This document shows, in pieces, positions 8,310 to 59,657 of a DNA stretch of 64,000 nucleotides (positions are counted from its first letter, which is position 1; every line of letters begins with the position of its first letter). The stretch comes from Epiperipatus broadwayi (lineage: Eukaryota > Animalia > Onychophora). A program made the position numbers and the translations under genes. The notes under the pieces are model-generated. The model had not been told where the DNA came from. It did not search any database and was given only the letters and a program-made list of their open reading frames with translations. The stretch covers positions 8,122,001 through 8,186,000 of the forward strand of contig JAQFVV010000002.1 of the NCBI GenBank assembly GCA_028023455.1. Direction: 5' to 3'.

Positions 8310-8368
8310 AGGTACTTTTCCTCCACCACTTTTTGTGTTAATTCGAAGATCAACAACATTTCCATATG
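8310..8368 (-). CDS. G3BP: G3BP/Rasputin internal 59-nt exon (RRM part)
   Basis: Acceptor ttttgtttcttag, donor GTAAGT. Encodes (A)YGNVVDLRINTKSGGGKVP, matching G3BP RRM SYGNVVELRINSGGKLP. The 2-nt phase start completes the 1-nt phase end of the exon at 59,658. Confidence 0.9.
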
Positions 8369-12143: not shown

Positions 12144-12289
12144 ATAGAGAAGACACGTGAATCTGTCAATCTTTTAACACCAACCTTTTCAGAAGATTCT
12201 CAAGACCTCCGACGAAATATAAGATCAAAAACCAATTCACCATCTATAAATCCGCTTGCGGTTATCTATAGCGATCACCAACACAGTGC

Positions 12290-15200: not shown

Positions 15201-15490
15201 TAGGTAATATTAAAATAATAATATTTAACAATTCTAAGATAGACTACTACAAAATACTTAATATAAAAGAATGCATTAGTGGAAGAGATATTCCTACAAT
15301 CAGGCTGGCAATTTTCACAACCTATGCCATTTGGATTGTAAGGTGCAAGGCACAATACCAACATCCCAAGCCAGATGAAAACTAATTATTTATTCAGAGC
15401 ATAGAGAAATTTAAACAAAGAGACAAAACTCTTGCAACAACATTCATTTTTCAAGAGACATGGAAGCTATATCAGACTCTTCAATAAAGT
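12290..15490 (+). pseudogene. LINE ORF2: AP endonuclease, reverse transcriptase and C-terminal Zn finger, disrupted
   Basis: LNIKG (about 12,316), MGETK, GDFN, SDHFAV; IRPISM, SQYA, LDISEAFDSVN, YMDD; CGRDEETFDHIIKTC. Multiple frameshifts and stops. Confidence 0.9.
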
Positions 15491-19688: not shown

Positions 19689-20047
19689 ACAATCATGCAT
19701 TGTTAATTGCAAAATCACATTGGGGAAAGAAAGTCATCACTTGTGAAGCTATAATTATCAAAACTGAGATGAAATTGTACCAAACATTTAACATCTTGCT
19801 GCGAAACATCAAATTTATTATTAATAAATGGATTGAACAACTTTACATCCACAGCAGAAGTTCTAAGGAGGAAAATTATAAGTAACTTAATGGAAGTTCT
19901 AGAACACTCATATTTAACCATCTATACCTAGAATGGATTAAATGAGGATTATTATAATTATTCATTAGGACATTTCTCTTATGAAGTTTAAAACTACATT
20001 TAGATTGACATAATCAATTTTATTTATTTTATGTAAATCTCTTCGTT
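19689..20047 (+). repeat. Dispersed repeat (LINE-like C-terminus/3' UTR); inverted copy at 28,754-29,051
   Basis: ACAATCATGCATTGTTAATTGCAAAATC...AGAAGTTCTAAGGAGG...TCATTAGGAC...ATGTAAAT.TCTTCGTT is shared in inverted orientation. Confidence 0.8.
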
Positions 20048-23000
20048 CATAGATTGGGGAGGGAGGGGGAGGGATAAGTGTTAATACTGTAGCAGTCATA
20101 TTTGATATTCAAACAACAAAATCCAGTTTTGGCAAATTATCCCAAGGCTGATCTAGATGAGGAGTTGAGACCTTCAATCCGATCGCACCTTAGTTCCTTC
20201 ACTAATACTTCATGATTTACTACCTTATGGATGATATATAGGCCATACTCGGAGTTCCTTAATTCGCATGCAGACAGTAGCAAAGGGTGGAACACAAGAC
20301 TTGAGAACTACAATGACTAACCTGAATTACCTAATAGATACACCCATCTATGGATGTTAGATGAATGAGTATATTCAAACTTAAAACTAACATGACAATT
20401 TAGAAGATGTGGTTGAATGGAAACGAGCTTGGAATAAGATGCTGAACATGTATACATTTTATATATATTTATTTGCAAAAATAAATAATAACAATATGAC
20501 AATAGTGCATGAGGTTACACCGCAGGTGTATAATGATGAATGGGTTTGGACACAAGATCTCATCTTTATTTGCACTTTATATAATTTATCAATTACAATT
20601 ATTACTACTTTATGAATTAAGTTATATACGGTTTAATATGCCTCACTTATGCTTTTGGTTAATAAGAATGATAACATTAAATATAACTTATTTATTAATA
20701 TTATAATAGCAATAAGTGTGCTCCCTATGCAGATCGTCTATATAAACTAGATCTGGAGTTCAGATCAATGCTGAACTGAATATAAAGGAAGACGAACTGG
20801 AGATTTGCAGCATAGCTTCCCAAACTATGGTGCTACATAAATTAAATAAGGGTTGTGGCTCGAATATGCAATTACTCATGGGATTCAGTACCAAGTACTC
20901 AACTCCTGTGGACCATAGGATTTGCTATCCTAAAATATAAGAACATTTAGTTCAGGTGATCAGAGCAGCTTAATATACGGTTCTGGACCCTCGTGTTCCA
21001 ATTCTAAAAGAGAGCTGCCCAAACTAAGAATAATGGGGTGGCCCTTAAAACCAAAGCCCATTTTAATAATTGGCATAACAAGGTGTAATGCACAGATGTG
21101 CTTCCTAAAGACACACTCGCAACACTTTCCAATTATCAAAATTAATAAAGCGTTAAATCTTTAGTTTCGATCTGCGAAACTACTACACGCCCATTCATAA
21201 ATTAGCATACTTAAAACATGCTAAAGGAGTTAATTAAAATGATTTATTTACTAATTAAATCTATTTAGTTTATGATAATAAACCAAGGAGGACTAAAGCA
21301 TATTTGGGACTTAACTAGTTACTTATAATATGCTTCAAAATATCATTCCTGCTATTACTTAAATAATATATAATTATTTAACATGCAAACCTGGATTATA
21401 TTAAGCAACATAATAACTTAATTAACATATAAAATAGGTTTCAGAATGGAAATTAGTATGTGTGCCATAGAACAATATAAGATTATATGAGAGCACCTAA
21501 TTGCCTTTCTACTGTATAATATTAGCAATCTCTGATCTGAAATACAGCATAGCATAATTAATAAAATATCAATACTAAGTAATGAAGGCATAACCACAGA
21601 TTGAATAGATTAAGAACAATAACTGACGACAGTTATCATATAAAAGAGAGTGTATTACTTAAACTTTTAATTAGGCAAGATCTTACAATATTATTATTTT
21701 TAAATAAGATTACATTCAGAGATTTAAACCAATAATTACAAATTCATTACAGAGTTCAATTATTAAGAGTAAATTTTAGTTTAACAGTTTGTGCATTTAT
21801 ACTATAGCTAGCTTATAAGAATTATTAGCAATTTATCAAGATTTAATTACGATCATCTTCTTGCTGTGGTGGCTTACATGGCATAGGCACTAACATTCAG
21901 TGATGGGCTACTTCATTCTTGGTGGCTTCTTGGTTAGAATGTTGTTCTTGATCCCTTCCATTTCATAGACCAGTGCCCTCCACGAGGAAAACGACGATAG
22001 GGCTTCTAGTCATGGGGCTCATGGTAAATTTGGCATAGCCTGGCTGTATTTGATTTGTAAAATGATGAGAGTTCATTTTTGAATTAAAACTGGGGTTTTT
22101 ATAGCAAATGGTTCTCACCTCCTCACAAGCCATTAAGTTGTTTATACAATTTTTAGTTTTAAATTCTTAAGTTTTAAAAACTAATAAATTTTAGTAAAGA
22201 CAAAAGATCCAGTTGGGGCTATTGACAAGTAGTGCCAGTCCAATGATTTTGTCCTTACTTTTTAACTTTATTTTTAAATTTCGGTTTTCATTTACAAACT
22301 AACGAGATGTATTTCTAAGAAACCGACGACCCTTTTCTTCTCTTTTTTAAAAGTAATTTAAGTTCTGTCAACATTCTACTATATGTATAAGACAGTCACT
22401 CCTGGTTTTAAGATTTTATATGCGAATACAAACAAATTTATAATAACTTAAGAGATAATTTAGACAAGTTGTAATGTTCACAAAATCTATCACATTAGTT
22501 TCCTTTGCATATATACATAGGTGCGCTTCTACACAAACAACGCCATTTACACAACTTACTTTAATTTAATAATTTAAAATTAGAACTGCATTATACGCCT
22601 ACAGCTTTGATTAATTAATGTACGCAATATAAATACACGAATATACTCGTTAATAGAACTTTTATACACTATTTTAGTATTAATTTAACAAATATACATG
22701 GTCTCGGATGGGTTTGAATTAGAGAAAATATACTACTATGAAACATAGTAGGTGAAATTGGATGATAGATAAATCATACTGTTTCAATCCATGAGATAAA
22801 TATTATTACCATTATTATAAGTTAAAATAAAATATACATTACGACGAGAACTTGCTTGTTTACAAATCCAATCATCATCAAGGGAAAGGCAAGATTTTAC
22901 CTAATACATATTTATTCCCTACATATGTACCATTACTCTATTATCCATTTTTTTGTTTGTTTATACTGATATTTTAGTTAAATGTTTTCAGTATATTTGA

Positions 23001-25899: not shown

Positions 25900-28400
25900 T
25901 AAAGATGAATCTTTAATTCCTTATCTTTCTATTATTTAGGAATTAAGCTAAGATAGGTCTATGACTTTTATTTAGGGGTTGTTTTAGTTTATCTTTAATT
26001 ATTTTTTCTAAAAAGATATATTTTATTTTTGCTAGGGTATCTTGGCCTGAACTTTGTAATAATTAGCCCATCATATAGTACTAGTATTTTTGATTGCTTG
26101 ATTTGTTCTACTCTCAGGAGTATTTTTCATACAATAGGACTTTACTTCATATACCTGATATTATGAGACACAGTTTATTACTTATATAATGATATACCAA
26201 AAACTTTTATAGCAGATCTGATTAGAGAAGCAGCTAAGTATCACCTTAGATAACTTGTGCATTAGTTTAAGTATAGGTTTGTTTAAGAGTATATATCATG
26301 CTCTTTTGCTTTGAGACTTAGTGGATTTTCTTCGGTATCGGTTAAACGAGTTGTCATTAATTTGTAAATGAAGTAACTTGTTAGAGTAATCACTCTCAGT
26401 TTCTGATAATAATGGTATGATTCATTACTGATTCTAGAAATATAATTTGTAAAAGTTAATTTTTCAACTGTATCTTAGGACATAAGTTTTGTAATGAGTG
26501 TCCTCCCCATTACATTTCTACTAATCATAATCCTAATCATTTATTACATGGGTTTAAATTCATACCTCTAGATTTTGTTTTGAATGAAAATGGCATATAT
26601 ATATATCTTATTTAAAATGGGAGAAAATTTGTTTTATTCCACTTCTCCATGATATGATTTCCATATCTTTGGTTTGTAAGTTCCTTTGGGTCTATCTCAA
26701 TTATTCACCCATTATGTCTTTGTGATGACACATTTAAAGATCAATGGGTCCTTATATATGTTACAGAGTTTATAAAACACTAATTCTTTTGAAAAACTAA
26801 TGTGTTTGTTTTTTAAAAAAATGTTTTATCTACAATTTTTAATTGGTAATTTGGTTTGCAGTGATAGTGTTGATTATTGCAGTATTTGGTAATCATTAAA
26901 ATATTACCAACAGTAATGTATACTCTTCTATGATAAGATCTGCTTTTTATATTCCTAGTTATCTTCATCATCCTTATTGTAAAGTTGATTAAACCTTTTT
27001 TTTTTTTTTAAAAAAAAAGGCTTATTATATAGTCGTAATCCTATGGGTCCTTTTCCATTATTTACTCTTAAGGCTTTACAATGGTATGACAAATAAAGTT
27101 AAATGGACCATCATAGGTATTACATAATTTATGGAACATAAAACCTTTTGAATTCTTACTTGGTGGTGTTTTAATATGTGTTGCCTCCAATCTTGATTTT
27201 ATACCTTGTTTCTTTTTATTTTTAACCTGTTTTGTGCTTTTTTATTATTATTTGATAAGTATCCATTTGATTTTTTCCTCGATCACTGGGTTTTCCATAA
27301 GGATAATAAAGGGTTTCTGAATTGGAGCTAATTGAATTGGTTTTTCTTTAGGTTCTTCGAGTTTGTGGTTCCAAGGCTAATGGCTTCATTTTGAATATTT
27401 ATAATTGATTGGGTGGTATGATTATTTATATTTTCTTTCCTTGGGTAACAAATATTTTCATTATTATTTTATGTTATATGCAAACATTCGATCTCGTTAT
27501 CCATTTTATACTGATCTCCAATCTTAATTTTTTTTAATCAATTTTATTAGTTTTCACAATATGATTCAATTTCTCTGTTATTGTTTCGATCAAATTCGGA
27601 AAGTTTACATTTTGAGATTTTTTTACTTTATTCTTTCATTTTATCCAATTCCTATCATATTTGTCTTTCAAATTTTTAATTTAATGAAGTGTTACTGTTT
27701 TCTATTTAATTTAATATGCTAGTATGATTTTCAAGTAAAATTTCAATAGCTTTTATTTTACTTTATTTCGATGTCCATCAAGTTGTTCTATATTAAGGCA
27801 TTGATAATCGTTTTCCATTGACTGAAATTTTTTTCATGAGTTTTTTATGGTGTCTGATTTCTACATGAATATTCTTCAATCATTCAGTGACATCCTTTTG
27901 TTTTCTTTTTGATTTTGATGAATTTTATGATCAAAATTTCCATATATTTTTTCATTTCCATATATCTTTACTTTCTATTTTTTATCACTTGCAGGCTTCT
28001 TGCCGCTTGTTGATGGTACTGGAGCATCACCCCGCAGTCACATGTGGCGTAAGTTACAACTACCATTATTTGTTATATCTGCTTTCATATTATCCATCTT
28101 GATGAACATTTGCTGCATTATTATCATCACTTGATTAAATATATCATTAGCATTTCCTTTCTCTTCCTGTAGTTTATTTGGAGTTTCAGTAATTTTTGGG
28201 GAATGAATAATTCCTACTGTGGCCCTCTCAGATATACTAAGATGCTGTTCTATATCTTCTAAAATATTACTCTCCATTTCTTCTCTGTTTCATTTCATAT
28301 TTCAATACTTGTTTATGGTCGTATCATTTTGATTTTGCTTCTGGTAATCATGTATTTTTCTATTACTTTATCTTAATTTATTATTTTTACACTGAGATAA
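25900..28400 (-). mobile_element. Decayed Ty3/Gypsy-like internal remnant
   Basis: Minus-strand K/E/N-rich gag-like stretch (27.4-28.3 kb) and FHKLCNTYDGPF at about 27,105-27,150, resembling the integrase C-terminal Y-[DE]-G-P-[FY] motif. Otherwise unreadable. Confidence 0.4.
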
Positions 28401-28753
28401 ATATTTCCTATAATAATGTACGTCGTGGAAATATTCATCATCGTTAATATTTTTACTTATCCTTGAATCAAAACAAAATTTTATGTTCACATGAATGGTT
28501 ATTTTATTTTACTATTTATTCTCTCCATATTAAAGCATATTAACCAATTGACTACCATCTATTTTATATGATTTTTTACTTGTAAGTAAATTTCAATATT
28601 CAAGTTCAATTTGTTACCCCAAAATAAAAATTTATAAATATGTTTTTACTATTGAAATTATTGAATTGTAGATTAACTTATAATAATGGTAATATTTATC
28701 CTTTATGTACCCCCCGCAACTCCTCGCAGTATGCACATTAAAGAAAAGATATA

Positions 28754-29190
28754 AACGAAGACATTTACATAAAATATATAAATAAAATTCATGATGTTAA
28801 CTTAAATATAGTTTTAAAGTTCATTAAGAGAAAAGTCCTAATGAGCGATTATACATTTACTTAAAATATCCCTCCTTAGAACTTCTCCTGTGGAGTGTAA
28901 AGTTGTTTGATCCATTTATTAATAAATTTTGATATTTTGCAACAAGATGTTAAATGCTAGACCAATTTTATCTCAGTTTTAACAATTATAGTTTTTTGAG
29001 TGATGAATTTCTTTCCCAGATATGATTTTGCAATTAACAATGCATGATTGTCTGTATTGATAATTACGTAGCTGTATCAAAAATTTTGTGAATTTATTCC
29101 AATTAAAATAGATAGTGGAATTACGTAAATAATGATTGAGATTCCTATTGAGATAGGATGATTTATAATAAAAAATCATATTCCAACAGT
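28754..29190 (-). repeat. Inverted copy of the 19.7-kb LINE-tail repeat, ending at the NUMT edge
   Basis: Reverse complement aligns with 19,689-20,047; weaker similarity continues toward about 29,150. Confidence 0.75.
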
Positions 29191-29209
29191 CAGTGATGTG
29201 AGGTAAAGG

Positions 29210-29255
29210 ATTGTCATTGATTAAATTCTAAATTTAAAATTTTATTGTTAGATTA
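29210..29255 (-). tRNA. trnL1: tRNA-Leu(TAG)-like remnant at the left NUMT edge
   Basis: Minus-strand anticodon arm TTAAA-TTTAGAA-TTTAA (29,237-29,221); other arms unclear. Confidence 0.4.
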
Positions 29256-29960
29256 AATTTCCATTTAATCTACTTTGTTTCGACTTTTCTTGTTTTTGCA
29301 AGAATGACGGGCGATATGTACATATTAATATTGATTTTCAATTTATCATGATAATATGATTTTACTGACAAATTCTGTTTATGAAATTTTTCAATTTTAT
29401 GTATGTTAATATAAATTAATGTAATTCATTTCATCTTAATAAAATTGCACCTTGACCTGATTTGATAGATTGTTCTATTTTGAGATTAATTTTAAGTAAT
29501 TTCTTATACGGTGGTATACAAATAAGTATTAAGTAAGGTAAGTCGTGGGTTGTCGATTATAGAAACAAATTCCTTTGTAAAAGTTAGTACCGTCAAATTT
29601 ATTTTGTTGTGTTTCTTTGAAGTATTGTTTTACGATAGAATAGCAGGGTATCTAATCCTGGTTTTGAACTAAATTTGGAATTATTTTAATAATATTATTA
29701 TTAGAAATTTCATTTTTAAGAAAAATATGGTTAAATTTATTTATTCAGAAAAAATTAATTTATAATGACATATAACCGCTGCTGCTGGCACGAATTTGGC
29801 CTCTAATAATTTTTAGATTTAAAGTAATTTATTACTTATGATTTTGTTAATAAAATATATTTTTTAATTGAAATTTTATGAAAAGTTTAAAAAGTTAATT
29901 TGTTTACATAAATTAAATAAAAGATTTAAGAATTAGTTTTTAAAAAATTGTATAGTTTAT
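29247..29960 (-). rRNA. rrnS: Mitochondrial small-subunit (12S) rRNA
   Basis: Reverse complements of conserved 12S motifs: GTGCCAGCAGCAGCGGTTA (about 29,773-29,791), TGTACATATCGCCCGTCA (about 29,305-29,322) and the terminal helix GTAGATTAAAT-GGAA-ATTTAATCTA. 5' end approximate. Confidence 0.92.
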
Positions 29961-29989
29961 ATATAAGTATATAGTAATTATATTATTTG

Positions 29990-30940
29990 AAAATAGTTTT
30001 TTAAAGAAATTGAAAAGGAGTAATTAAAATTTAGGAAGTAATTTATTGTACTTTTTGCATAATGGATGTATGATAAGTAGTTAATTTAACACCTCTAAAA
30101 AAATTGATCTAGGTTTTTTTAAAAAAATTGTTGCACAAATTTTTTTTAAAAAAAAACCTAGAAGTGAAATGCTAACGAAATTTTTGATATATAGTTCTTA
30201 TAAAATCACTATAGGTGATAAAATAAATTTATTAAATACATTAATGGTTTAGCATTAATGTAAATATTGGTATTTATTTATATGATGTTAAGGTTAAGTT
30301 TAATATTAAGATAAGTTAAGTTAATGTATGTTTAAATATATTATAAATATTAATTTTAGGAATTCAGCAAAAGTTGTTTCATCAGTTTATCAAAAACATA
30401 GCTTTATGAAAATATTTAGGGTATTGTCTGCTCAATGAGCATTAAATTGCCATGGTATTTATGACTATGCTAAGGTAGCATAATCATTTGTCTTATAAAT
30501 TAAGACTGGAATGAATGGATAAATGGGGCAGATTTCTTAGAGAAAAAATAATTTTTTTTAGTGAAGAGGCTAAAATGAAATTGAGGGACGAGAAGACCCT
30601 ATTAAGCTTAATAAGATTATTTTGTTGGGGAAACAAAAGAGAATATTTTCTTTAAAAATATTTTTTGATACGTGTTGCTCTTCCGATCTAATAGAATAAG
30701 TTACTATAGGGATAACAGCATAATTTTTTTTAAAAGTTCTTATTTACAAAGAAGATTATGACCTCGATGTTGGATTAGAAATATTATATGGTGAAGTTGT
30801 TGTATAAATTAGTCTGTTCGACTATTAAATTTCTACATGATCTGAGTTCAAATCGGTGTAAACCAGATTGGTTTCTATCTTCAAATATTTTGTGTTAGTA
30901 CGAAAGGACCACATGAAGTTTTTTAAAGAGTAGATTGAAC
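29990..30940 (+). rRNA. rrnL: Mitochondrial large-subunit (16S) rRNA
   Basis: AAGGTAGCATAATCA, GACGAGAAGACCCT, GGGATAACAGC, GACCTCGATGTTGGATT, ACATGATCTGAGTTCAAA, TAGTACGAAAGGACC on the + strand. Ends approximate. Confidence 0.93.
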
Positions 30941-30998
30941 TCTTTTAGGTAAATATATAGACTTTGGAAGTCTAAGATGAATGATTTTTCAATTAAAA
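30938..30998 (+). tRNA. trnP: tRNA-Pro(TGG)
   Basis: Anticodon arm TAGAC-TTTGGAA-GTCTA at 30,958-30,974, immediately before nad4L. Confidence 0.7.
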
Positions 30999-31277
30999 AT
31001 GTTAATTCCAATTATATTTATTATTGTTGGTGTTATTACATTTGTTATATATCGGGTTCATTTGTTGTCAATGTTATTAAGATTGGAGTTTATTATATTG
31101 AATATTTTTTGATTAATAATATCATGATTAGTGTTTTTAGGTAAGGAATTATTTTTAAGTTTAGTTTTTTTAACTTTAACTGCTTGTGAAGCTAGTTTAG
31201 GATTATCATTGATGGTTAGGTTAATTCGGAGTCACGGTAATGATTTATTCAATAGTTTAAGAATTGTAAGATGATAG
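30999..31277 (+). CDS. nad4L: NADH dehydrogenase subunit 4L (NUMT copy, frame intact)
   Basis: ATG to TAG; HLLSMLLSLEF and ACEASLGLSLMV..IRSHG motifs; classical 7-nt ATGATAG overlap with nad4. Confidence 0.92.
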
Positions 31278-32626
31278 AAATTTTTATAATATTTATTATG
31301 TTATTTGTTATGTGGATATTTGAGTTAATGCGTTGGGGATTTATATTGAATGTAATGTTAATTATTATATTAATTTTTTTTTTTACTAAATTAAATATAT
31401 GCATGTTTGTAACAAGAATTTCTAGAGGATTTGGTGTTGATATAGTGTCTATACCATTAACAATATTAAGAATATTAACTTGTGTATTAATGATATTTTC
31501 TAGAATAAAGATTTTGTTGAAGGATGATTATAAGGATTATTTTTGTTTAATAGTTTTGATTTTGAATGTTGTTTTATTTTATACTTTTGTTGCGTTGAAT
31601 ATTTTAGTGTTTTATGTATTATTTGAGTTTACTTTAATTCCTACAATTCTTTTGATTATAGGTTGAGGTTATCAGCCTGAACGTTTACAGGCTATGTTGT
31701 ATTTATTATTTTATACTTTGTTTGCATCATTCCCATTATTAATGGGAATTATTGGGATGTATTGATGAATAGGAAGAATATCTATTATTGTATTAATAAA
31801 AAGTTATTTTTTTATGAGTGAGTTTATGATATTATATTGAATTATTTGTATGTCTGCTTTTTTGGTAAAGTTACCAATTTATGTTGTTCATATTTGATTA
31901 CCAAAGGCTCATGTTGAGGCTCCAATTTCTGGGTCAATAATTTTAGCAAGGGTTTTGTTAAAGTTAGGAGGTTATGGTGTTATTCGATTTTCTATGATTT
32001 TTAAAAGAATTTCAGTTAAGTTTAGTGAGTTTTTTATTTGTTTGAGTTTGTTTGGAGGGATTATAACTAGAATGGTTTGTATTCGACAGGTTGATTTAAA
32101 AGCATTAATTGCTTATTCTTCTGTTGGGCATATAGGATTAATAATCAGGTCAGTTTTTGTTATAAGTAAGTGAAGGATTAATGCGGCTATATGAATAATG
32201 GTAGGGCATGGATTTTGTTCTTCTGGTTTGTTTTGTTTATCGAGAATTTCTTATGAGCGTTATCATTCTCGTAGAATGATGGTTTCTAAAGGAATGATGA
32301 GGTTGTTTCCAAGTTTAAGATTATTTTGATTTATGTTTGTTATTGCTAATATAGCAGCCCCACCATCTTTGAATTTATTAGGAGAAATTGGTATTATTAA
32401 TTCTTTAGTGTTTTGGAGTAATATTAGAATTTGTTTATTAATTTTTATTTCTTTTTTTGGTGCTGTATATAGTATATATTTATATTCATATACTCAGCAT
32501 GGACAAATATTTTTTAATTTAAATTGTATAAAATCAATTAGGTATGTTGAGTATTTTTTGTTGTTTTTACATTTGTTGCCATTGAATTTGTTGTTATTAA
32601 AATCTGAGTTTTTAATAGTTTATTAG
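31271..32626 (+). CDS. nad4: NADH dehydrogenase subunit 4 (NUMT copy, frame intact)
   Basis: [43 protein letters not shown]; one frame with only TGA interruptions. Confidence 0.95.
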
Positions 32627-32669
32627 AATTTTTAATTGGAAATTAAATGTAATATATACTTATATCTTT
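32612..32669 (-). tRNA. trnG: tRNA-Gly(TCC), 3' acceptor strand unmatched
   Basis: D arm GTA-TATAT-TAC; anticodon arm TTTAA-TTTCCAA-TTAAA (32,647-32,631). Confidence 0.7.
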
Positions 32670-32719
32670 TAGATTATTTAAAGCTTTGAAGGCTTTTAGT
32701 TTTGTTAACTTATTAGCTT
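32670..32719 (-). tRNA. trnW: tRNA-Trp(TCA), 3' end runs into trnG
   Basis: D arm AGTT-AACAA-AACT; anticodon arm AAAGC-CTTCAAA-GCTTT. Confidence 0.8.
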
Positions 32720-32763
32720 ATTTTTGAATTATGAATTCAAAAGCTTTTTTAGCTTATAGTGAA
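32720..32763 (-). tRNA. trnM: tRNA-Met(CAT), ends 4 nt after the anticodon arm
   Basis: D arm AGCT-AAAAA-AGCT; anticodon arm TTGAA-TTCATAA-TTCAA; then AAAT and trnW begins. Confidence 0.8.
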
Positions 32764-32810
32764 CTATAATTTAAACTTCAAAAGTTTAAGTGTCAAACAC
32801 TTATGAATTT
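32764..32810 (-). tRNA. trnQ: tRNA-Gln(TTG), 3' portion overlaps trnM
   Basis: D arm GTG-TTTGA-CAC; anticodon arm TAAAC-TTTTGAA-GTTTA. Confidence 0.75.
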
Positions 32811-33802
32811 TCCATATTATTTTTTATTTTATTTTTTGTTAATATTTAGTTTATTAATTCAAATGAGAATGAGTTCATGAATTTTTATTTAGGTTGGTTT
32901 AGAGATAAATATGTTATGTATTATTCCAATTTTAGTTAGAAGAATTAAAAATATAAATGAAAGGGCAGTTAAGTATTTTATTATTCAAGTATTTGGTTCT
33001 ATTATTTTATTAATTGGTTTTTTTTTAAGTACTATATTATTAATAAGTTATTATTACTATGATGTAATTGGATATGTTTTTTGAATATCAATGATGTTGA
33101 AAATGGGAGCTGCACCTTTTCATTTTTGATATCCTGGTGTTTTAGAGAATTTAAGATGATTAAATATTTTTTTGATGATAACAGTTCAAAAATTTGGACT
33201 TTTGTTTATTATAAGATATTTATTGAGGTTTAGGGTTTATTTATTTTTTAGGGTAATATTAAGAGTAATTATTGGTGGGGTTGGAGGTTTTAATCAAGTA
33301 ATAATACGTAGTTTGTTTGCATATTCATCTATTGGTCATGTTGGTTGGATAATTGTTTCTATTATGTTGAGGGATTCTGTTTGGGTTATTTATTATTCAT
33401 TTTATTTTATAATAATGATATTGTTTTGTATTTTATTTTATTTGAAAGGAATTGTTTATATTAATCAAATATTTATTTATTTTTCTAAATTTGAGAAATG
33501 GATTGTTTTATTAAGGATGCTTTCTTTAGGGGTTTTTCCCCCTTTAAGGGGTTTTTTTCCTAAAATTATAGTGTTAAATATTTTGATATTGAAAGGTGAG
33601 AAGATTTTGGTATTAATGATGTTAATAGGAATGTTAGTTGGATTATATTATTATGTTCGTTTAATGTATGTAAGAATAATGTTTGAGACATTAAGGTTAT
33701 TACATTATTTAAAAGTAAAAAAAAATTTAATATTGGATTGGTGATTACATGTTTTAATAATGGTAATATTATTTATCATTCCAGTTGGAATGATTTGATT
33801 TT
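32803..33802 (+). pseudogene. nad2: NADH dehydrogenase subunit 2 with premature TAG at codon 30
   Basis: ATG at 32,803; SSWIFI*VGLEMNML with TAG at 32,890-32,892 at the conserved Trp; KYFIIQ, KMGAAPFHFW, AYSSIGH. Incomplete stop abutting cox1. Confidence 0.9.
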
Positions 33803-33803
33803 A

Positions 33804-35326
<1,523 letters not shown>

Positions 35327-35327
35327 T

Positions 35328-36005
35328 ATGGCAAGGTGAAATGAGTTGATATTTCAGGATGCATCCTCTCCTTTAATGGAGCAATTGATTTTTTTTCATG
35401 ATCATTCGTTATTAGTTTTAATTTTAATTACAATTTTAATTGGGTATAGAATATTTAGTTTAATTTTGAATAAAAATTTGATGCGTTATTTGTTGGAAGG
35501 TCAGTGAATTGAAATGATTTGAACAGTTTTACCTGTATTTATTTTAGTATTTATTGCTTTTCCTTCATTACATTTATTATATATGTTGGATGAGGTTTCT
35601 GATCCGTTTTTAAGAATTAAGGTTGTTGGACATCAATGATATTGAAGGTATGAATATAGAGATTTTCTAGATGTTGAATTTGATTCTTATATAGTTAGGA
35701 TGGATGATTTAGAGTTTGGTGATTTTCGTCTTCTTGATGTTGATAATCGATTAATTTTACCATTTAATGGTCAGATTCGTTTTTTGATTAGGGCTGCTGA
35801 TGTTCTTCATTCTTGAACTGTTCCATCCTTAGGAGTAAAGGTTGATGCAGTTCCTGGGCGATTGAATCAGATTGTGTTGTATTTAAATCGGGTTGGATTA
35901 TTTTATGGACAATGTTCTGAAATTTGTGGTGCAAATCATAGTTTTATGCCTATTGTAATTGAATCTATTCCGATAAAGTTTTTTGTTAAATGGGTTATAA
36001 GATAA
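35328..36005 (+). CDS. cox2: Cytochrome c oxidase subunit 2 (NUMT copy, frame intact)
   Basis: [49 protein letters not shown]; follows cox1 after 1 nt with no trnL2. Confidence 0.96.
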
Positions 36006-36049
36006 AGAGTATAATTTATAAAAATATAAATATGTCAAATTTAAAATGA
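36005..36049 (+). tRNA. trnD: tRNA-Asp(GTC), only about 45 nt before the atp8 start
   Basis: Anticodon arm TAAAT-ATGTCAA-ATTTA (36,027-36,043); atp8 ATT begins at 36,050. Confidence 0.75.
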
Positions 36050-36208
36050 ATTCCTCAGATATATCCATTGAATTGAATGTTAATGATACCATTTAGAATT
36101 TTTATTTTATGAATTTATTTAGTTTTAGTTTACTATTTGATTAGATATTTAAAGTTTCAGGTGAAATTTAAAAATCAAATAAAAATTGTTTGTTTTTGGG
36201 AATGATAA
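36050..36208 (+). CDS. atp8: ATP synthase F0 subunit 8 (NUMT copy)
   Basis: ATT start, MPQMYPLNW...FWEW*; ATGATAA 7-nt overlap with atp6. Confidence 0.9.
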
Positions 36209-36875
36209 TAGGGTTATTTAATGTTTTTGATCCGTCGTCAAGAGTTTATATATTAGGATTTAATTGGGTTTCTATAATGATTGGAGTTTGTTTTATTCCT
36301 TTATGGTTTTGATTAATTCCTACTCGTTTAGTAGGAATTATAAATTTTATATTGAATTTTTTGAATAATGAATTTAAAATTCTTTTGATAATAAGAAATA
36401 TTAAGGGGATAACACTTATTTTTATTAGGTTATTTCTTATAATTATGTTAAATAATAGATTGGGTTTGATACCATATGTATTTACAAGAACAGCCCATTT
36501 ATTGGTTACTTTAAGATTAGCTTTTCCTTTATGGATTAGTTTTTTGATTTTTGGATGAGTTAATAAAATAATAATAATGTTTGCTCATTTAGTTCCATTG
36601 GGAACACCTTCAGTTCTAATATCATTTATGGTTTGTATTGAGACAATTAGAAATTTTATTCGTCCATTGACTTTATCTGTTCGATTAGCGGCAAATATAA
36701 TTGCTGGTCATTTATTATTGAGATTAGTTGGAGGTCAGGGAAGATTTTTAGGTATAGTGATGTTATTAGCGTTATTATTTGGGCAAACATTGTTAATAAT
36801 GCTTGAGAGGGCTGTTTCTGTTATTCAATCATATGTTTTTGTTGTTTTAAGAAGTTTATATTCAAGTGAGGTATA
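36202..36875 (+). CDS. atp6: ATP synthase F0 subunit 6 (NUMT copy)
   Basis: [45 protein letters not shown]. Probably an incomplete stop before cox3. Confidence 0.93.
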
Positions 36876-36877
36876 TT

Positions 36878-37663
36878 ATGATAAGACATAATCATCCATA
36901 TCATATGGTTGAGTTGAGTCCATGACCGATTATTGGGGCGTGCGGGGCATTATTATTAACATCTGGATTAGTAAATTGATTTCATAATTATATAATAGGA
37001 TTATTATTAATAGGAGTTATTATTATTATTTTAACAATAATTCAATGGTGGCATGATGTTGTACGTGAAGGTACATATCAGGGGCTTCATACTACAAATG
37101 TAGTATTTGGTCTTCGTTGAGGTATAATTTTGTTTATTTTATCAGAAGTTTTATTTTTTTTTAGATTTTTTTGGGCATTTTTTCATAGAAGTCTTGCTCC
37201 GACAATAGATTTAGGGTCTTATTGACCACCATCAGGTGTAATAGTCTTGAATCCATTTCAAGTTCCTTTATTAAATACTGCTGTATTGTTAGCTTCAGGA
37301 GTTACTGTGACTTGGGCTCATCATAGTTTGATAGAAAGAAATTATACTCAAGGGGTTCAGGGATTGTTTTTTACTGTTTTATTAGGTTTGTATTTTACTT
37401 TATTACAAGGAATAGAATATTATGAATCAAGCTTTTCTATTTCTGATTCTGTTTATGGAACAACATTTTTTGTTGCTACTGGATTTCACGGATTACATGT
37501 AATTATTGGTAGTAGATTTTTATTGATTTGTTTAATACGACAATTTAGTTTTCATTTTTCTAAAATTCATCATTTTGGTTTTGAAGCTTCTGCTTGATAT
37601 TGACATTTTGTTGATGTTGTTTGGTTATTTTTATTTATTTCAATTTATTGATGGGGATCATAG
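36878..37663 (+). CDS. cox3: Cytochrome c oxidase subunit 3 (NUMT copy)
   Basis: [52 protein letters not shown] stop; WWHD replaces the near-invariant WWRD. Confidence 0.95.
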
Positions 37664-37670
37664 ATTTTTG

Positions 37671-38021
37671 ATGTTAGTATTAATAATTATATTTTTTGTT
37701 GTATTTTTAATTGTTTTAGTATTATTAATGTTTATGTATTTTTTTCTGAGAAAAGGTATAAAGACCGTGAAAAAAATTCTCCTTTTGAATGTGGATTTGA
37801 TCCTTTTAGATCAAGGCGATTACCTTTTTCTTTACGGTTTTTTTTAATTGGAATTATTTTTTTAATTTTTGATATTGAAATTGTTTTAATTTTACCATAT
37901 CCTATTAGAATAGAGTTAATTCAGGTTAGAAGAATGTACTTGGTTGGTCAATTATTTTTGTTTATTTTATTAATTGGTTTAATTCATGAATGAAATCAAG
38001 GTGCTCTTGATTGAGCAGTTT
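37671..38021 (+). pseudogene. nad3: NADH dehydrogenase subunit 3 with a 1-nt frameshift in a T7 run
   Basis: Hydrophobic N-terminus from ATG 37,671 is out of frame with [13 protein letters not shown] / [14 protein letters not shown]; shift at 37,739-37,745; incomplete stop. Confidence 0.9.
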
Positions 38022-38070
38022 ATTTACCAAAACAAATGTGTTTAGTTTCGACCTTTAGTGTAACTTGAAC
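38020..38070 (+). tRNA. trnR: tRNA-Arg(TCG)-like
   Basis: TTAG-TTTCGAC-CT anticodon loop at 38,046-38,052; weak stems. Confidence 0.55.
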
Positions 38071-38117
38071 TTATATATTTTGTTTTCAAAACAAATTCTT
38101 TCATAAGATTAATAGTA
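38062..38117 (-). tRNA. trnS2: tRNA-Ser(TGA)
   Basis: Anticodon arm TTTGT-TTTGAAA-ACAAA (38,095-38,079), directly downstream of cob on the same strand (ancestral cob-trnS2 link). Confidence 0.7.
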
Positions 38118-39249
38118 ATTCAATAATTTTTTTATAAAAAATTATTGAGTATGGGATTAAGAAAAATGTCATGAAGTATGCTATGGATAATAGTTGACCA
38201 AAAAAGATGTATGGTGGTTCAACTGGATTTGCTCCAATTCATGTTAGTAGAATAATGATTCTAATATATATTCAAAAAAGAAATTGATTTCATTTATTAA
38301 ATGATGATGATAAATAATTTTTTGAAATTAAAGGAAGAGAGAATAGAATTATAATAGATATTAGTAGGGCAATTACTCCTCCTAGTTTGTTTGGAATTGA
38401 TCGGAGAATTGCGTAGGCAAATAAGAAATATCATTCAGGTTGAATGTGAATTGGAGTTACTAATGGGTTTGCTGGAATTCAATTTTCTGGATCCCCTAAT
38501 AAGTTAGGATAGAATAAAACTAAAAAGGTTAATAATAATATGAATATTATTATTGAAATTATATCTTTAATTGAGAAATATTGATGAAATGGAATTTTAT
38601 CAGAATTTGATTTTAACCCTAATGGGTTATTTCTTCCTGTTTGGTGAAGAAATAATAAGTGAATTATAACTAGGACTATAATAATAAAAGGTAATAGAAA
38701 ATGTAGTGAGAAAAATCGAGTTAATGTTGCATTTCTAACTGCAAATCCTCCTCATAGTCAATTAACAGTTATTGTTCCAATATATGGAATTGCTGATAAA
38801 AGGTTTGTAATTACAGTTGCTCCTCAGAAAGATATTTGTCCTCATGGAAGAACATAACCAAGAAAAGCTGTTGCTATAGTTAACAATAGAAGAATAATTC
38901 CAATATTTCATGTATAATTTAGTTTAAATGAGTTATAGTAAATTCCGCGTCCAATATGGATGTATAGACAAATGAAGAAGAATGATGCTCCATTTCTATG
39001 AAAAAATCGAATTAATCATCCATTATTTATACCTCGTGAGATGTGAATAATGGATCTGAATGCTAAGTCTATGTTATCTGAATAGTGTATTGCTAGTATA
39101 ATTCCTGTGATAATTTGAAATAGTAATGAAATGCCAAGTAATGATCCAAAGTTTCATAGATATGAAATATTAGATGGGGTTGGTAAATCAATTAATCTAT
39201 TGTTTATAATTAGTAATAATGGATGAGTTTTTCGTTCTGGTTTTATCAT
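38118..39249 (-). CDS. cob: Cytochrome b (NUMT copy, frame intact)
   Basis: [62 protein letters not shown]; incomplete stop. Confidence 0.96.
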
Positions 39250-39250
39250 A

Positions 39251-40180
39251 TTATCATAGTTGAATAATTTTATAGTTTAAAATGATTATTAAAACTCTTA
39301 AGCTAATTGGTAAGAAAACTTTTCATGTTAGAAATATTAATTTGTCATATCGAAAACGTGGATAAGAACCACGGATTCAAATAAATGAAAATGAAATTAA
39401 TGTTGTTTTAATTATTATAAAAAATGGGAAGTTTATGTTACTTCCAAAAAAAATTATAGAAGTAATTATTCTTATTAGGAGAATACTTGAATATTCTGCT
39501 ATAAAAATTATAGCAAATCTTCCTCTTCTATATTCTGTGTTAAATCCTGAAACTAATTCACTTTCACTTTCTGCAAAGTCAAAAGGAGCTCGATTAGTTT
39601 CAGCTAAAATTGAGGAGAATCAACAAATAAATAATGGTAAAAGGATAATAAAGTTTCAGATTAATAATTGAGAATTATCAATAATTATAAGGTTATATCT
39701 TTCTGATAAAAAAATAATGGTTAATAAAATGAGAGCTAATCTAACTTCATATGAAATGGTTTGAGCAACTGCTCGTATTGTCCCAAGTAAGGAAAATTTT
39801 GAGTTTGATGATCATCCAGCTATTATTATAAAATAAACTGTTATTCTTGTTATGCAAAGGAAAAATAATAATGCAAAATTAAAATTTATTGGGTTTCATT
39901 TTATTGGGATTAATATTCAAATAAATAGTGAAATAATAATTCTTATTGTTGGTGCAATTAGGAAAGTTATTCGATTTCTTAAATTTAATCATCTATTTTC
40001 TTTACAGAAAAGTTTTATTGCATCACTAATTGGTTGTAGAATTCCAATTAAACTAATTTTGTTTGGACCTTTTCGAATTTGAATATATCCAAGAATTTTT
40101 CGTTCAAGTAATGTTAAGAATGCTACTCTAATTAGAATAGAGATTAATAGAATTAAGTAGAAAATTAATGATAAAATCAT
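39251..40180 (-). CDS. nad1: NADH dehydrogenase subunit 1 (NUMT copy, frame intact)
   Basis: [54 protein letters not shown]; 930 nt from ATG to TAA. Confidence 0.96.
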
Positions 40181-40223
40181 ATTTACGAAACTTAAATTCG
40201 TTACATTTTTCTGACATGAAATT
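40181..40223 (-). tRNA. trnL2: tRNA-Leu(TAA), ends 4 nt after the anticodon arm at the nad1 ATG
   Basis: D region TCAG-AAAAA-TGT; anticodon arm ACGAA-TTTAAGT-TTCGT (40,201-40,185). Confidence 0.75.
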
Positions 40224-40260
40224 TGTTTAGTGTAAATAAACTGCTTTTTGCTTTTAGGTT
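40224..40260 (-). tRNA. trnV: tRNA-Val(TAC), ends about 1 nt after the anticodon arm
   Basis: Anticodon arm GTTTA-TTTACAC-TAAAC (40,241-40,225). Confidence 0.7.
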
Positions 40261-40300
40261 TGATTTACAAAATCAATATGCTAATTTATTTGGAACTATT
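40260..40300 (-). tRNA. trnT: tRNA-Thr(TGT), ends at the anticodon arm
   Basis: Anticodon arm TTGAT-TTTGTAA-ATCAA (40,276-40,260); trnV follows immediately. Confidence 0.65.
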
Positions 40301-40345
40301 TAGTTTTTATAATATTGATTTGTGGAATCAAAGATTAATTGAAGG
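40294..40345 (+). tRNA. trnH: tRNA-His(GTG)
   Basis: Anticodon arm TTGAT-TTGTGGA-ATCAA (40,315-40,331), directly upstream of nad5 (ancestral trnH-nad5 link). Confidence 0.75.
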
Positions 40346-42050
40346 GTTTAGGTTTAAATTTAGTAAGAATATTTTGTTTATTTTTTTTTGAATTTTATTT
40401 ATTTGTAGAATTCGTTTTTGTAATGAAAAGCTTGTTTATGTTTTTGAAATTGAATTATTAGAAGTTAATTCTAGAAGAATTATTATAACTATAATTTTTG
40501 ATTGAATATCAGTAATGTTTATAACTGTAATTTTTCTTATTTCTGGATCTGTTATAAAATTTAGATGTGAATATATAATTGAAGAAAAAAATAAGTTACG
40601 TTTTTGTATTATTGTAGTTTTATTTATTATTTCTATAGTTTTTTTAGTTGTTTCACCAAATTTGATTTCTATTTTGTTAGGATGAGATGGTTTAGGGTTG
40701 GTATCTTATGTCTTAGTAATTTATTATCAAAATAGGAAATCAAATAGGGCTGGTATATTAACAATTTTAAGAAATCGAATTGGGGATGTTGCTTTTTTGA
40801 TTTGTATTGCATTTATACTAAATCATGGTAATTGGAATTATTTTTCAATGAGTTGGTTAGATATAAATATTATTAATGTTATGATTATATTAATACTATT
40901 AGCTGGAATTACTAAAAGTGCTCAAATTCCTTTTTCAGCATGATTACCTGCTGCTATGGCAGCACCAACTCCTGTATCAGCATTAGTTCATTCATCAACA
41001 TTGGTTACTGCTGGAGTTTTTTTGTTAATTCGTTTTTCTGAATTTTTTAGAACAGAAATGTCATTTAAGGTTAGTTTATTATTTATATCAAGGTTAACTA
41101 TGATAATGGCAAGAATTGTTGCTAATTTTGAATATGATATTAAAAAAATTATTGCTTTGTCAACTCTTAGGCAACTTGGGTTGATAATAAGTATTGTATC
41201 ATTAGGATTTTCTACTTTAGCTTTTTTTCATTTATTAACACATGCAGTTTTTAAAGCATTATTGTTTATTTGTTCTGGAAGAATTATTCATAATTTTAAT
41301 CATATTCAAGATATTCGAATACTTGGATTTGTAACTAATCAGTTACCAAAGGTAAGAATTTGTTTAAATACAGCAAATTTGGCTTTATGTGGGATACCAT
41401 TTTTGGCTGGGTTTTATTCTAAGGATATAATTTTGGAAATATATTGTTATAGAAATTGAAATATTATTTCATTTTTTATATTATTTGTTGCTACTTCAAT
41501 AACAGCATCATATTCTATTCGAATAGCTTATTATTCATTTTGAAAAAAAGTTCATTCTAAAAGAATGAACTCTGTTTTTGAAGGAGGAAGAGATATTAGA
41601 GATTCTGCAATAATAATAAGTTTAGGGGCTGTTATTGGTGGGTCAATATTTAGATGGATAATTTTTAGTAGAGTTATTTATATTGAATTAATTTTTATAT
41701 TAAAAATTTTAACATTAATAATTACTTTTATAGGTGGTGGCTACATACTTAGTTTTCAAAAAGAATTTTTTTTAAAAAAAAATATAATAAAAATTTATTT
41801 TTTCTTTTCTCAAATATGATTTTTTCCAAAAATCAGGTCACAAATGTTTATAAAATTAATTATAAAATGAAGAAAATTTTCTTTTGAAAAAATTGATTCT
41901 TTATGAATTGAATCAATAGGACCTCAAAATATTTATATTACTGTGATAAAAGGATCTATAGTATTACAAATTATTCAGAAAAATTCAGTAAAGACGTATT
42001 TATTTAGGATTATTATTATGGTTTCATTTATTTATTTTTTTTTCTTTTAA
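40338..42050 (+). CDS. nad5: NADH dehydrogenase subunit 5 (NUMT copy, frame intact; start approximate)
   Basis: [68 protein letters not shown]; TAA at 42,048-42,050. Confidence 0.95.
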
Positions 42051-42102
42051 CATAGCTCTTAGCATATTGTTGAAGATAATAAGATGCAACAATAAATTGT
42101 TA
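42045..42102 (+). tRNA. trnF: tRNA-Phe(GAA), apparently T-armless
   Basis: D arm GCT-CTT-AGC; anticodon arm TATTG-TTGAAGA-TAATA; acceptor TTAACA/TGTTAG; follows nad5. Confidence 0.75.
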
Positions 42103-42135
42103 GTTAGAAACTAATAATAAACTAATTTAAGAACA
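42085..42135 (-). tRNA. trnS1: Possible tRNA-Ser(TCT)
   Basis: TTAG-TTTCTAA-CTAA arm on the minus strand (42,114-42,100); rest of the fold uncertain. Confidence 0.35.
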
Positions 42136-42165
42136 ATAAATTGTAAATTTATTTTAAATTTTTAT

Positions 42166-42190
42166 GACTCGCCTTTTTTTTTGGCGAGTC
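42166..42190. promoter_or_regulatory. GC-rich stem-loop with T9 loop in the non-coding region (putative replication-origin hairpin)
   Basis: GACTCGCC-TTTTTTTTT-GGCGAGTC: a perfect 8-bp stem in otherwise very AT-rich sequence. Confidence 0.65.
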
Positions 42191-42312
42191 GATGTAAAAA
42201 AGAATTTGTATTTGTATGTATTAGTATTTTTTTGATATAAATTTTATTAGAAAATAATGAGATATTGGTTATTTTTTACTAAGAAAAGTTTTTTTAATAG
42301 TATATATTGAAT

Positions 42313-42364
42313 ATGTTTGTATATTTAAATTATAAAATTTAATTTGCGTTTAAAAGTTGAATGA
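42313..42364 (+). tRNA. trnA: tRNA-Ala(TGC)-like
   Basis: Anticodon arm TTTAA-TTTGCGT-TTAAA (42,338-42,354). Confidence 0.5.
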
Positions 42365-42425
42365 GTATTTGTAAGCAATTTGCTTTTAATTGTTAATTAA
42401 TTTAGTTAGCCAGATTTGGTGTACA
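42365..42425 (+). tRNA. trnN: tRNA-Asn(GTT)-like
   Basis: D arm AAGC-AATTT-GCTT; anticodon arm TTAA-TTGTTAA-TTAA (42,386-42,400). Confidence 0.55.
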
Positions 42426-42555
42426 TTGATGATGTATATATATATATATAAAAAGCTTATTGATGCAATTAATATATCAAGGGTACAAATGATTTCGCGC
42501 AAATGCGTAAAATATGAATCGTGTTATTTATATAGTTTTTACTAGAATGTCTTGT

Positions 42556-43700
42556 TGTTTCTCTGCTAAAAACGCAGAAATATGCCGTTTACATAGCCCA
42601 ATATTTCTGTGCTTTTGCAGAGAAACCTACGGTCTATAGAACAGTACTTGTTCATATTAGACGCTCAGCCATATATGGCGTCGCACACCAATATTACGGC
42701 CTGCTAATGTGCTTCGCGACACTGCAAATATGCATACTTAACAGATCGTGATCATATGATGTGAGGGTGGAGGGAATTCAAGTGGCCATAACTGTTGTAA
42801 TATGCATTCTAATTAAAGATCTTACCCCCTACCTGACATAGAATTTGATACTAATAATTGTAACATCGTAGCCGTGCTTCCCTACAAATTTTGGAAGGTG
42901 GAAAACATTGCAAAAGGTCATGGCCAAGCACCTTTTCCCAGAACTCACGCGAATAGCCACGTAAATTACGAGATAAATAAAATATCTGAGGTTGCACATA
43001 GTTTTGGAAATCATAAACTTGGTTTGATCAGTGATGACAAATTATTTGTCAAACCCCCCCCCCCCAAAAAAAAAAAACATTACAATGAGATCAAAACTTT
43101 TTTCAACTTTGGTTTTTTTAAAAAAAATACAGCAACTTTTTTTTGGCTATACAGTGATTTTTGTTGAATACTGCTGATATACTAAAACTTTTCTTTTTAA
43201 AACCAGTTTTTATTAACCTTTTTTTACAAATAAAAACAAACCAAAAATAACTTTTGTCTCTTTTGTCTGAGTGATGACAAATTATCCCCCCCCCAAGTTA
43301 AACTAAGATCAAAACTTTTTCAACTTTGGTTTTCCTTTTTGTTTTTAAAATACGGCGATTTTTGTTTTGGCTTTTATTTGTATTACGCGATGTTTTTAAT
43401 TTTGCCATTTTTGAAAACAAAAATGTACAAATAATTGAATCAAATCTTGTATCGTAAATTATTTACAAGAATGTCAAAATATTGGTAAAAAGTCTTATCA
43501 AATGTTCAAATATTTTTAAAAAAGGTGGAGAAAATGTAAAAATATTTTAATAAAAGTCTGACAAATTGGAAAAAAAATATTTTAATAAAAGTCGGAGAAA
43601 ATGTAAAAATAATTTAATTAAAAATAGTCAGGTCCGGATCGATATAATTGTGCATTTTTAGCAGAGAAACACCACCACCAAGTGGCTGGCCTGATATACC
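42556..43700. mobile_element. Non-autonomous TIR element of the same motif family as the Merlin copy; left end truncated
   Basis: TGTTTCTCTGCTAAAAACGCA (42,556-42,576) vs TGCATTTTTAGCAGAGAAACA (43,651-43,671). The right end extends to a GGTATATC-type terminus (43,700) with no left counterpart. Internal subrepeats at 43,030-43,330. Confidence 0.6.
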
Positions 43701-43730
43701 GGATTTATTTTTATATATTTTTTAATTATT

Positions 43731-44190
43731 TTATTTTTAATTATTATTAAACATATTTTGCAAATATTATGACCTGATTTAGATTTGTCTATAATGTTTT
43801 GTCTACATTTTAATAAGAATAAATATACGCAAATGCTAAAAGTAAAGATTTTGACAGTATATAAACTTAGGTTGATTATACATCATTATTTTATTTTTAA
43901 TTATTATTAAACATATTATAAACATATTTTGCAAATATTATGACCCAATTTAGATTTTTCCATAATGTTTTCTCTGCATTTTAATAATAATAAAAATATG
44001 CAAATGCTAAAAGTAAAGATTTTGACAGTATATAAACATAGGTTGATTATACACTACTGCAATGTAAATTTCAAAGCTGCATATCAAATGCAAAGAGAGG
44101 TGGCAGTTGATGAAGCTATTACTAAATTTATGGTCATAGTAGCATGAAGCAATATGAGCCCTCAAAACCTATAAAGATAGGATAAATAAT
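43731..44190 (+). mobile_element. piggyBac transposase fragment preceded by a ~160-bp tandem duplication
   Basis: LHFNNN..YK..YQMQREVAVDEAITKF(MG)HSSMKQYEPSKPIKIG matches the piggyBac [LV]DE[SA]M..F.GRS..KQY.P.KP.K.G motif. 43,731-43,880 is duplicated at 43,891-44,053. Confidence 0.8.
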
Positions 44191-59000: not shown

Positions 59001-59657
59001 TTTTAAACCCATTGCAAATCTGTATACATTTTGATATCTTGCATGATGATCATGCCTCTTACCCACCAATTACAAGTAGTACATATATCAGTATCAATTA
59101 TATCATATCAAATTAAATCAAATGAAAAAAAAAGAGCAGACTACTTTATCTATATACCGTGAACAATCATATATACCCACTATTATTTGCACCATGCCTT
59201 ATTAGGATGATCATTACAATATATATTAGTGTACTAAACATTTTACACACACTAAGTTTTTTAAGAATATAATATTCAGTGTTTGCCAGAATACCACATT
59301 TAAATATATTTAATATTTTTATTATAAAATATATCTATTCTATAAACAATGAGAAAATAAATATCATTTTCTCGAGTATCTAAATAGGAAATCAATATTA
59401 CATTAGGTTAAAATATTATGCAAATTTTCAGATTTGTTTACTCATTTATTTAGAAAATGTATCTGTTAATATTTATTTTATATAAAATACAAGTTTTAAA
59501 CTGCTTTTTCACTTATTTGCAAAATAGTTTTGTATAGGTCAAACATGTAATGGTTAAATGTCCACAAATGCAATTACCTCATTGCAGATAGCAAAATTCA
59601 TTAAAATTTCCCACCCCACAGAAACAAACTAAAATTAATGTTAAAACCAAGTTGTAC

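Follow-up and report, generated by a model that had tools for sequence, protein, structure and literature searches.

A near-complete mitochondrial genome copy, very probably nuclear, in a putative intron of a G3BP-like gene of the Epiperipatus broadwayi assembly

The stretch of DNA considered here (the window) comprises 64,000 nucleotides of the Epiperipatus broadwayi assembly (GCA_028023455.1, contig JAQFVV010000002.1, positions 8,122,001 to 8,186,000 of the forward strand) and contains, at window positions ~29,060-42,500, one block of arthropod-type mitochondrial DNA of 13.4 kb. The block is very probably a true nuclear copy, a nuclear mitochondrial DNA segment (NUMT), and not a misassembled mitogenome. 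Its base composition between 29 and 42.5 kb (GC ~0.22-0.30, GC skew +0.2 to +0.5, AT skew negative) differs from that of the rest of the window, and the GC skew separates it from its flanks; the assembly is free of gaps, with zero N across the 64 kb. Translation with the invertebrate mitochondrial code, combined with Pfam, recovers the 12 protein genes that the original prediction had claimed, with Pfam matches to ND4, ND2, COX1, ATP6, COX3, ND3, cytochrome b, ND1 and ND5 in stop-free pieces at E values down to 1e-54. The order is rrnS(-), rrnL(+), nad4L, nad4, nad2, cox1, cox2, atp8, atp6, cox3 and nad3 (all +), cytb(-), nad1(-) and nad5(+). Translation and Pfam did not find nad6 in the block, which also holds no long AT-rich control region. 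The two ribosomal RNA (rRNA) genes are likewise upheld, through conserved motifs that place rrnS on the minus and rrnL on the plus strand.

The many transfer RNA (tRNA) genes that had been anticipated are verified in part, as 8-9 tRNA-like sequences were recovered from the spacers of the block (ARAGORN in mitochondrial mode, default threshold). Rfam returned no matches to the block at gathering thresholds and two chance matches at E<=1, and ARAGORN with the bacterial code found no tRNA in the block, since its rRNAs and tRNAs have diverged beyond the reach of these models. A database homology search with a piece of nad5 found its closest relative no nearer than 71%, and two ORF pieces looked up as exact sequences matched no record. 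The predicted stem-loop does occur, as a perfect GC-rich hairpin in the tail that follows nad5.

The reading frames are mostly open, as had been predicted, and exactly two lesions interrupt them. nad2 starts with ATG at 32,803 and carries an in-frame TAG at 32,890-32,892, codon 30 of the translation, in place of a Trp that is conserved in ND2 proteins ahead of the GLE(I/M)N motif. In cox1 the frame shifts by -1 at ~35,180-35,190, within a T run or T-rich stretch, and the last ~48 codons (...WESLVSKR...YNELGMLNN) are recognisable in another frame. The remaining ten protein genes have the expected lengths and ends.

A block that is nearly full length, has 10 of 12 frames open and ends close to the control region, a frequent end point of linearised organelle contigs, is also what might be expected of a chimeric assembly, in which the assembler spliced the true mitogenome of the sample into a nuclear scaffold. 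The two can be told apart through read depth and through the distance to the organelle, and for this comparison, which covered window positions 27,600-33,500, sequencing runs were used in the form of Logan contigs, with a fraction of the rows only. X1 is a DNA run of the probable source sample of the assembly, and its depths seem to saturate at 25,000 per contig; X6 contains RNA of this species, and X7 is a low-coverage run. A further contig, from X5, belongs to organism B, the labelled relative of the species itself (A). Flank contigs of X1 that match the window have a word depth of 26.5-27.6. Inside the block, the X1 letters that differ from the window reach depths of 25,000-118,000, against ~30-960 for the window's own letters at those sites. 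A 209-nt X1 contig without differences from the window (31,251-31,459) has a depth of 63.9 and a 212-nt contig with one difference (30,161-30,372) a depth of 142, and measured against the single-copy flanks the insert-type sequence is present at ~2-5 nuclear copies.

The high-depth letters of X1 are the letters seen in X6 and X7, and the real mitogenome of the sample thus lies 6-9% from the insert. In eight organelle contigs of X6, 110 of 1,449 letters (7.6%) are not those of the window, and a 3,257-nt contig of X7, collinear with the window across rrnS and rrnL, fits 29,063-32,254 with 276 of 3,192 letters different and 26 gaps. The depth comparison proposed in the original prediction therefore separates insert-identical contigs (64-142) and flanks (~27) from the organelle (at least 25,000), and the proposed measurement of divergence gives 6-9% on organelle contigs within 27,600-33,500. 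Same-sample sequence at a depth of at least 25,000 that differs at hundreds of sites, window-identical contigs at depths of 64-142, junction words in four runs, the nad2 stop and the cox1 frameshift all count against a chimera. The X1 depth and the 6-9% organelle divergence rule out a chimera made from the true mitogenome, and such an origin of the block can hardly be credited. What was found instead is sequence of mitochondrial derivation, at nuclear copy number, distinct from the functional organelle and free to decay. The preference of the original prediction for a NUMT over a chimeric assembly is borne out by the organelle differences at hundreds of sites, by insert-identical contigs at nuclear-scale depth and by the left-junction words.

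Depth far under that of the main organelle would, on its own, be indistinguishable between a nuclear copy and a rare second mitotype, heteroplasmic or paternally leaked and ~7% diverged, that had been wrongly joined to nuclear DNA. Such a mitotype would also be expected to keep its frames almost intact and to show divergence of the selected type, at third positions, as the block does. Against it stand the junction-spanning words in four runs and a depth that is a small multiple of single-copy, and a molecule with the nad2 nonsense codon and the cox1 frameshift, lacking nad6 and the control region, would be non-functional; a second mitotype is accordingly extremely improbable.

The junctions of the nuclear copy are known to different degrees. 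The left edge had been predicted at 29,210 but lies at ~29,052-29,062: the organelle contigs of X7 and X5 fit the window only from 29,063 and 29,059, respectively, the X7 contig extends 61 letters to the left of 29,063 without fit to the window, and the flank resembles a nuclear repeat (85% to 19,689-19,885, inverted) as far as 29,051. A 60-nt query (29,032-29,091) was placed over this junction, with 26 of its 30 words crossing it, and all three of the 31-mers sampled are present in four DNA runs of the source sample, while the left-junction words were absent from X6 (an RNA run) and X7 (of low coverage).

Several points weigh against reading the block as a nuclear copy with these boundaries. 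The runs with the junction words all derive from the probable assembly sample: their evidence does not depend on the assembler, but no second individual contributes to it. In the fraction of the rows covered, no one contig was recovered that bridges a junction. The right edge, at ~42,450-42,530, is placed by the shift in composition and the gap-free assembly only. Both lesions were read from the assembly alone, and the cox1 frame change, in a T run, could be a consensus error. Finally, the organelle comparison was made with contigs and not with a full-length organelle genome of the species. The block could be a real NUMT that is misplaced or misbounded, with several copies in the genome and either a wrong right-hand flank or copies that have been collapsed. 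The insert-type contigs at 2-5x single-copy depth, the many other mitochondrial-like contigs at depths of 20-80 with 12-15% differences or internal skips, and the compositional placement of the right edge would all agree with this. It is nevertheless improbable, given a supported left junction, collinearity with the organelle contig over 3.2 kb and a window without gaps.

The further mitochondrial-like contigs of X1 are numerous over 29,000-33,500; with depths of 20-80, they depart from the window by 12-15% or contain internal skips. They may represent NUMTs at other places in the genome, either older or rearranged, or chimeras that formed in the library from the extremely deep organelle reads. 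No mitochondrial-like sequence was found elsewhere in the 64-kb window, nor any long direct repeats.

Table 1. Features of the mitochondrial block and of the G3BP-like host gene (window positions).
Feature	Position	Strand	Evidence
Left junction, nuclear repeat copy/mitochondrial DNA	29,052-29,062		Repeat-homology end, organelle-contig fit, junction words
Mitochondrial segment beyond the rrnS 3' end, probably tRNA or spacer	29,063-29,239		High-depth organelle contigs, ~8.6% differences
rrnS (12S rRNA), approximate limits	29,240-29,960	-	12S motifs at 29,305-29,321, 29,645-29,664, 29,773-29,791
rrnL (16S rRNA), short, approximate limits	29,990-30,925	+	16S motifs at 30,380, 30,587, 30,708, 30,835
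nad4L, open, 92 codons	30,999-31,277	+	Translation
nad4, open, 451 codons	31,271-32,626	+	Pfam PF01059, PF00361; translation
Spacer with overlapping trnW-, trnM- and trnQ-like sequences	32,627-32,802	-	ARAGORN mitochondrial mode
nad2 with in-frame TAG	32,803-33,798	+	Pfam PF00361; translation
cox1 with -1 frame change	33,795-35,323	+	Pfam PF00115; translation
cox2, open, 225 codons	35,328-36,005	+	Translation
trnD-like sequence	36,005-36,056	+	ARAGORN mitochondrial mode
atp8, open (IPQMYPLNW...)	36,050-36,211	+	Translation
atp6, open, 229 codons	36,202-36,891	+	Pfam PF00119
cox3, open, 261 codons	36,878-37,663	+	Pfam PF00510, E 1e-54
nad3, open	37,664-38,011	+	Pfam PF00507
cytb, open, 391 codons	38,071-39,246	-	Pfam PF13631, PF00033
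nad1, open, 309 codons	39,251-40,180	-	Pfam PF00146
nad5, open, 590 codons	40,278-42,050	+	Pfam PF00361; best database relatives named NADH-ubiquinone oxidoreductase chain 5
Non-coding tail after nad5	42,051-42,500		Right edge by composition, somewhere in 42,450-42,530
trnF-like sequence, tail	42,045-42,111		ARAGORN mitochondrial mode
trnV-like sequence, tail	42,110-42,171	-	ARAGORN mitochondrial mode
trnA-like sequence, tail	42,314-42,378		ARAGORN mitochondrial mode
Hairpin in tail after nad5, perfect 8-bp GC-rich stem, T9 loop	42,166-42,190		
(TA)8 run in tail after nad5	42,435-42,450		
G3BP-like exon (putative), linker and first part of RRM	59,658-60,036	-	Pfam RRM_1; phmmer matches to NTF2+RRM proteins
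Next G3BP-like exon (putative), RRM goes on: YGNVVDLRINTKSGGGKVP	8,310-8,368	-	tblastn E 1e-7, consecutive in query proteins

The pattern of differences between the insert and the organelle shows where most of the divergence arose. Among the listed coding differences, 14 of 15 are at third positions and 12 of 15 are synonymous; where organisms A and B agree against the window, 11 of 12 coding differences are at third positions. Every listed indel between insert and organelle falls in rRNA or spacers. In the genes of the block a random substitution creates a stop with a probability of 0.026, such that a neutral divergence of 7.6% predicts ~21 stops, of which one is seen. The bias to third positions and the scarcity of stops indicate that most of the divergence arose in functional mitochondria and not in the nucleus. 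The decay of the insert itself is most likely ~0.4% and under 2%, the probability of one stop or fewer being 0.02 at a post-insertion divergence of 2%. The differences carry the mark of purifying selection, and the insert is therefore close to the functional mitotype of its origin.

At the listed sites, which form a biased sample, the window stands against A and B jointly at 20, against A alone at 10 and against B alone at one. Read with the codon-position pattern, this distribution of sites makes the source mitotype an outgroup to those that A and B carry today. The block had been predicted to preserve a slightly older state of the mitochondrial lineage, and this holds in part: the mark of purifying selection and the position of the source as an outgroup to A and B agree with it, and the source may be their ancestor or else a side or replaced lineage.

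The original prediction set the block within an intron of a nuclear host gene, and two consecutive exons of a G3BP-like gene, with splice sites and phase in agreement, appear to bracket it. The only long coding-like piece near the block, at 59,644-60,036(-), ends in the start of an RRM domain, and in an exhaustive search the relatives of its exon (59,658-60,036) are NTF2+RRM proteins whose source names are ras GTPase-activating protein-binding protein 1/2 (G3BP1/2). A donor GT at 59,657-59,656 and an acceptor AG at 8,370-8,369 are consistent in phase and would join ...EHFS-A-YGNVVDLRINTKSGGGKVP, delimiting an intron of 51,289 nt (8,369-59,657, minus strand) that splits the RRM after ...LKEHFS. 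The exon matches and splice sites thus support a location of the block inside a 51-kb intron, antisense to the G3BP-like gene. The NTF2 exon was not found inside the 64-kb window and presumably lies beyond 64,000.

Such an intron is unusually large for a genome of some 130-170 Mb, a size roughly estimated as the 4.6 billion letters of the run divided by a flank depth of ~27. Besides the block and other repeats, it contains a non-LTR (long terminal repeat) retrotransposon at 10,100-15,400(+), with an endonuclease (PF03372/PF14529) and a reverse transcriptase (PF00078) broken over several frames. A zf-RVT piece is found at 6,162-6,692(-).

Sequence comparison within the window found no target-site duplication, no terminal inverted repeats flanking the block and no similarity from flank to flank, and the open reading frames of the flanks gave no hAT or other transposase with Pfam and the protein atlas. 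Two inverted copies of a nuclear repeat (28,750-29,051 and 19,689-20,051) are 83-85% alike, one of which stops 8-12 nt before the block, and, judging by summed depth in X1, the flank repeats would number in the tens to hundreds. Directly to the right of the block, a pair of 31-nt inverted repeats (42,553-42,583 and 43,644-43,674, 87% complementary) bounds a GC-richer segment of 1.1 kb, which may be a small DNA transposon; its open reading frames matched no known family in Pfam or the protein atlas. A tandem duplication of 167 nt follows at 43,716-44,053 (86% identity).

The organelle gene order that the insert mirrors is highly rearranged (29,063-42,050), with rrnS and rrnL head-to-head, nad5, nad4 and nad4L on the cox1 strand and cytb on the opposite strand. 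Both rRNAs are short, at ~0.7 and ~0.9 kb; strand skew is reversed, and recognisable tRNAs are few. Reversed strand skew is known in several arthropod groups (PMC2890569). With the organelle contig of X7 collinear over 3.2 kb, at least part of the rearranged order belongs to the living mitogenome and was not produced by the insertion.

For the mechanism and timing of the insertion, and for the relationship between the copies, we infer the following history. A linearised copy of nearly the whole mitogenome, without the ~1-1.5 kb that holds nad6 and most of the control region, would have been joined into a chromosome break, probably through end-joining repair. The break would have been located where a nuclear repeat copy ends, within the present 51-kb intron that splits the RRM. 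Having no function there, the insert would have decayed at the slow nuclear rate and acquired one nonsense codon and one frameshift, and over the same time the living mitochondrial lineage would have accumulated a divergence of 6-9%, for the most part silent. An alternative is that the mitotype was already that divergent when it was copied.

This last alternative concerns timing only: a very recent insertion would have been copied from a divergent 'ghost' mitotype that was since replaced through a sweep or introgression. A decay of only ~0.4% set against a divergence of 6-9%, a source outside both present mitotypes (20/10/1 listed sites) and a published parallel, the Drosophila paulistorum Mega-NUMT that is separate from the current mitotypes (PMC13565137), all agree with such an insertion. 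The numbers can, however, be explained without a lost lineage by a mitochondrial rate at least 5x the nuclear rate, and the list of sites is a biased sample. Mitochondrial rates of at least 5x the nuclear rate are ordinary in insects. On balance a recent insertion from a replaced mitotype is a serious but minority possibility. Still more tentative is the stronger proposal that the insert is a nearly intact record of a ghost mitotype now extinct in the species and its close relative, lost to a sweep or introgression; if this proved true, the nuclear copy would allow the ghost mitotype to be rebuilt one gene at a time and its replacement to be dated.

Large nuclear copies of mitochondrial DNA have been described elsewhere, and the block belongs to this well-known type of feature, notable for its size and nearly undecayed genes and involving no new mechanism. 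Fig wasp genomes contain NUMTs of 12.1-14.9 kb (PMC7600805), which like the present block place an unbroken stretch of mitochondrial DNA longer than 10 kb in intergenic or intronic positions, often near transposable elements, in AT-rich insect genomes. The block differs from the fig wasp NUMTs (PMC7600805) in that ten of its 12 protein genes are open despite the 6-9% distance from the living organelle, and in that its source mitotype lies outside the present ones. In Drosophila paulistorum, clusters of full-size mitochondrial copies stand apart from the current mitotypes, with some frames open (PMC13565137). There, as here, the nuclear copy is full-size or nearly so, some genes are open under the mitochondrial code with others frameshifted, and the copy is phylogenetically apart from the current mitotype; the Drosophila Mega-NUMT, however, gathers up to 60 copies in one cluster. 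One copy and no tandem array are found here, and the window thus lacks the array that characterises a Mega-NUMT. More generally, NUMTs have been regarded as 'molecular fossils', in which the nuclear copy changes slowly and without constraint while the organelle changes fast under purifying selection, and are known to insert at double-strand breaks and to leave no target-site duplication (Hazkani-Covo et al. 2010, PMC2820518; Bensasson et al. 2001). Compared to these fossils the block is the same in kind (PMC2820518), only unusually long and well preserved.

The insert has practical as well as scientific consequences for work on this animal. Its open cox1 barcode region, only 6-9% from the organelle, will be co-amplified in barcoding, and the insert can mimic heteroplasmy or cryptic species and contaminate mitogenome assemblies. 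Scientifically, it offers a snapshot, dated by its decay, of an earlier or lost mitotype, and it sets the minimum ratio between mitochondrial and nuclear change at ~5-fold. Taken with the many lower-depth mitochondrial-like contigs, the insert suggests a genome with active transfer of DNA from the mitochondrion to the nucleus.

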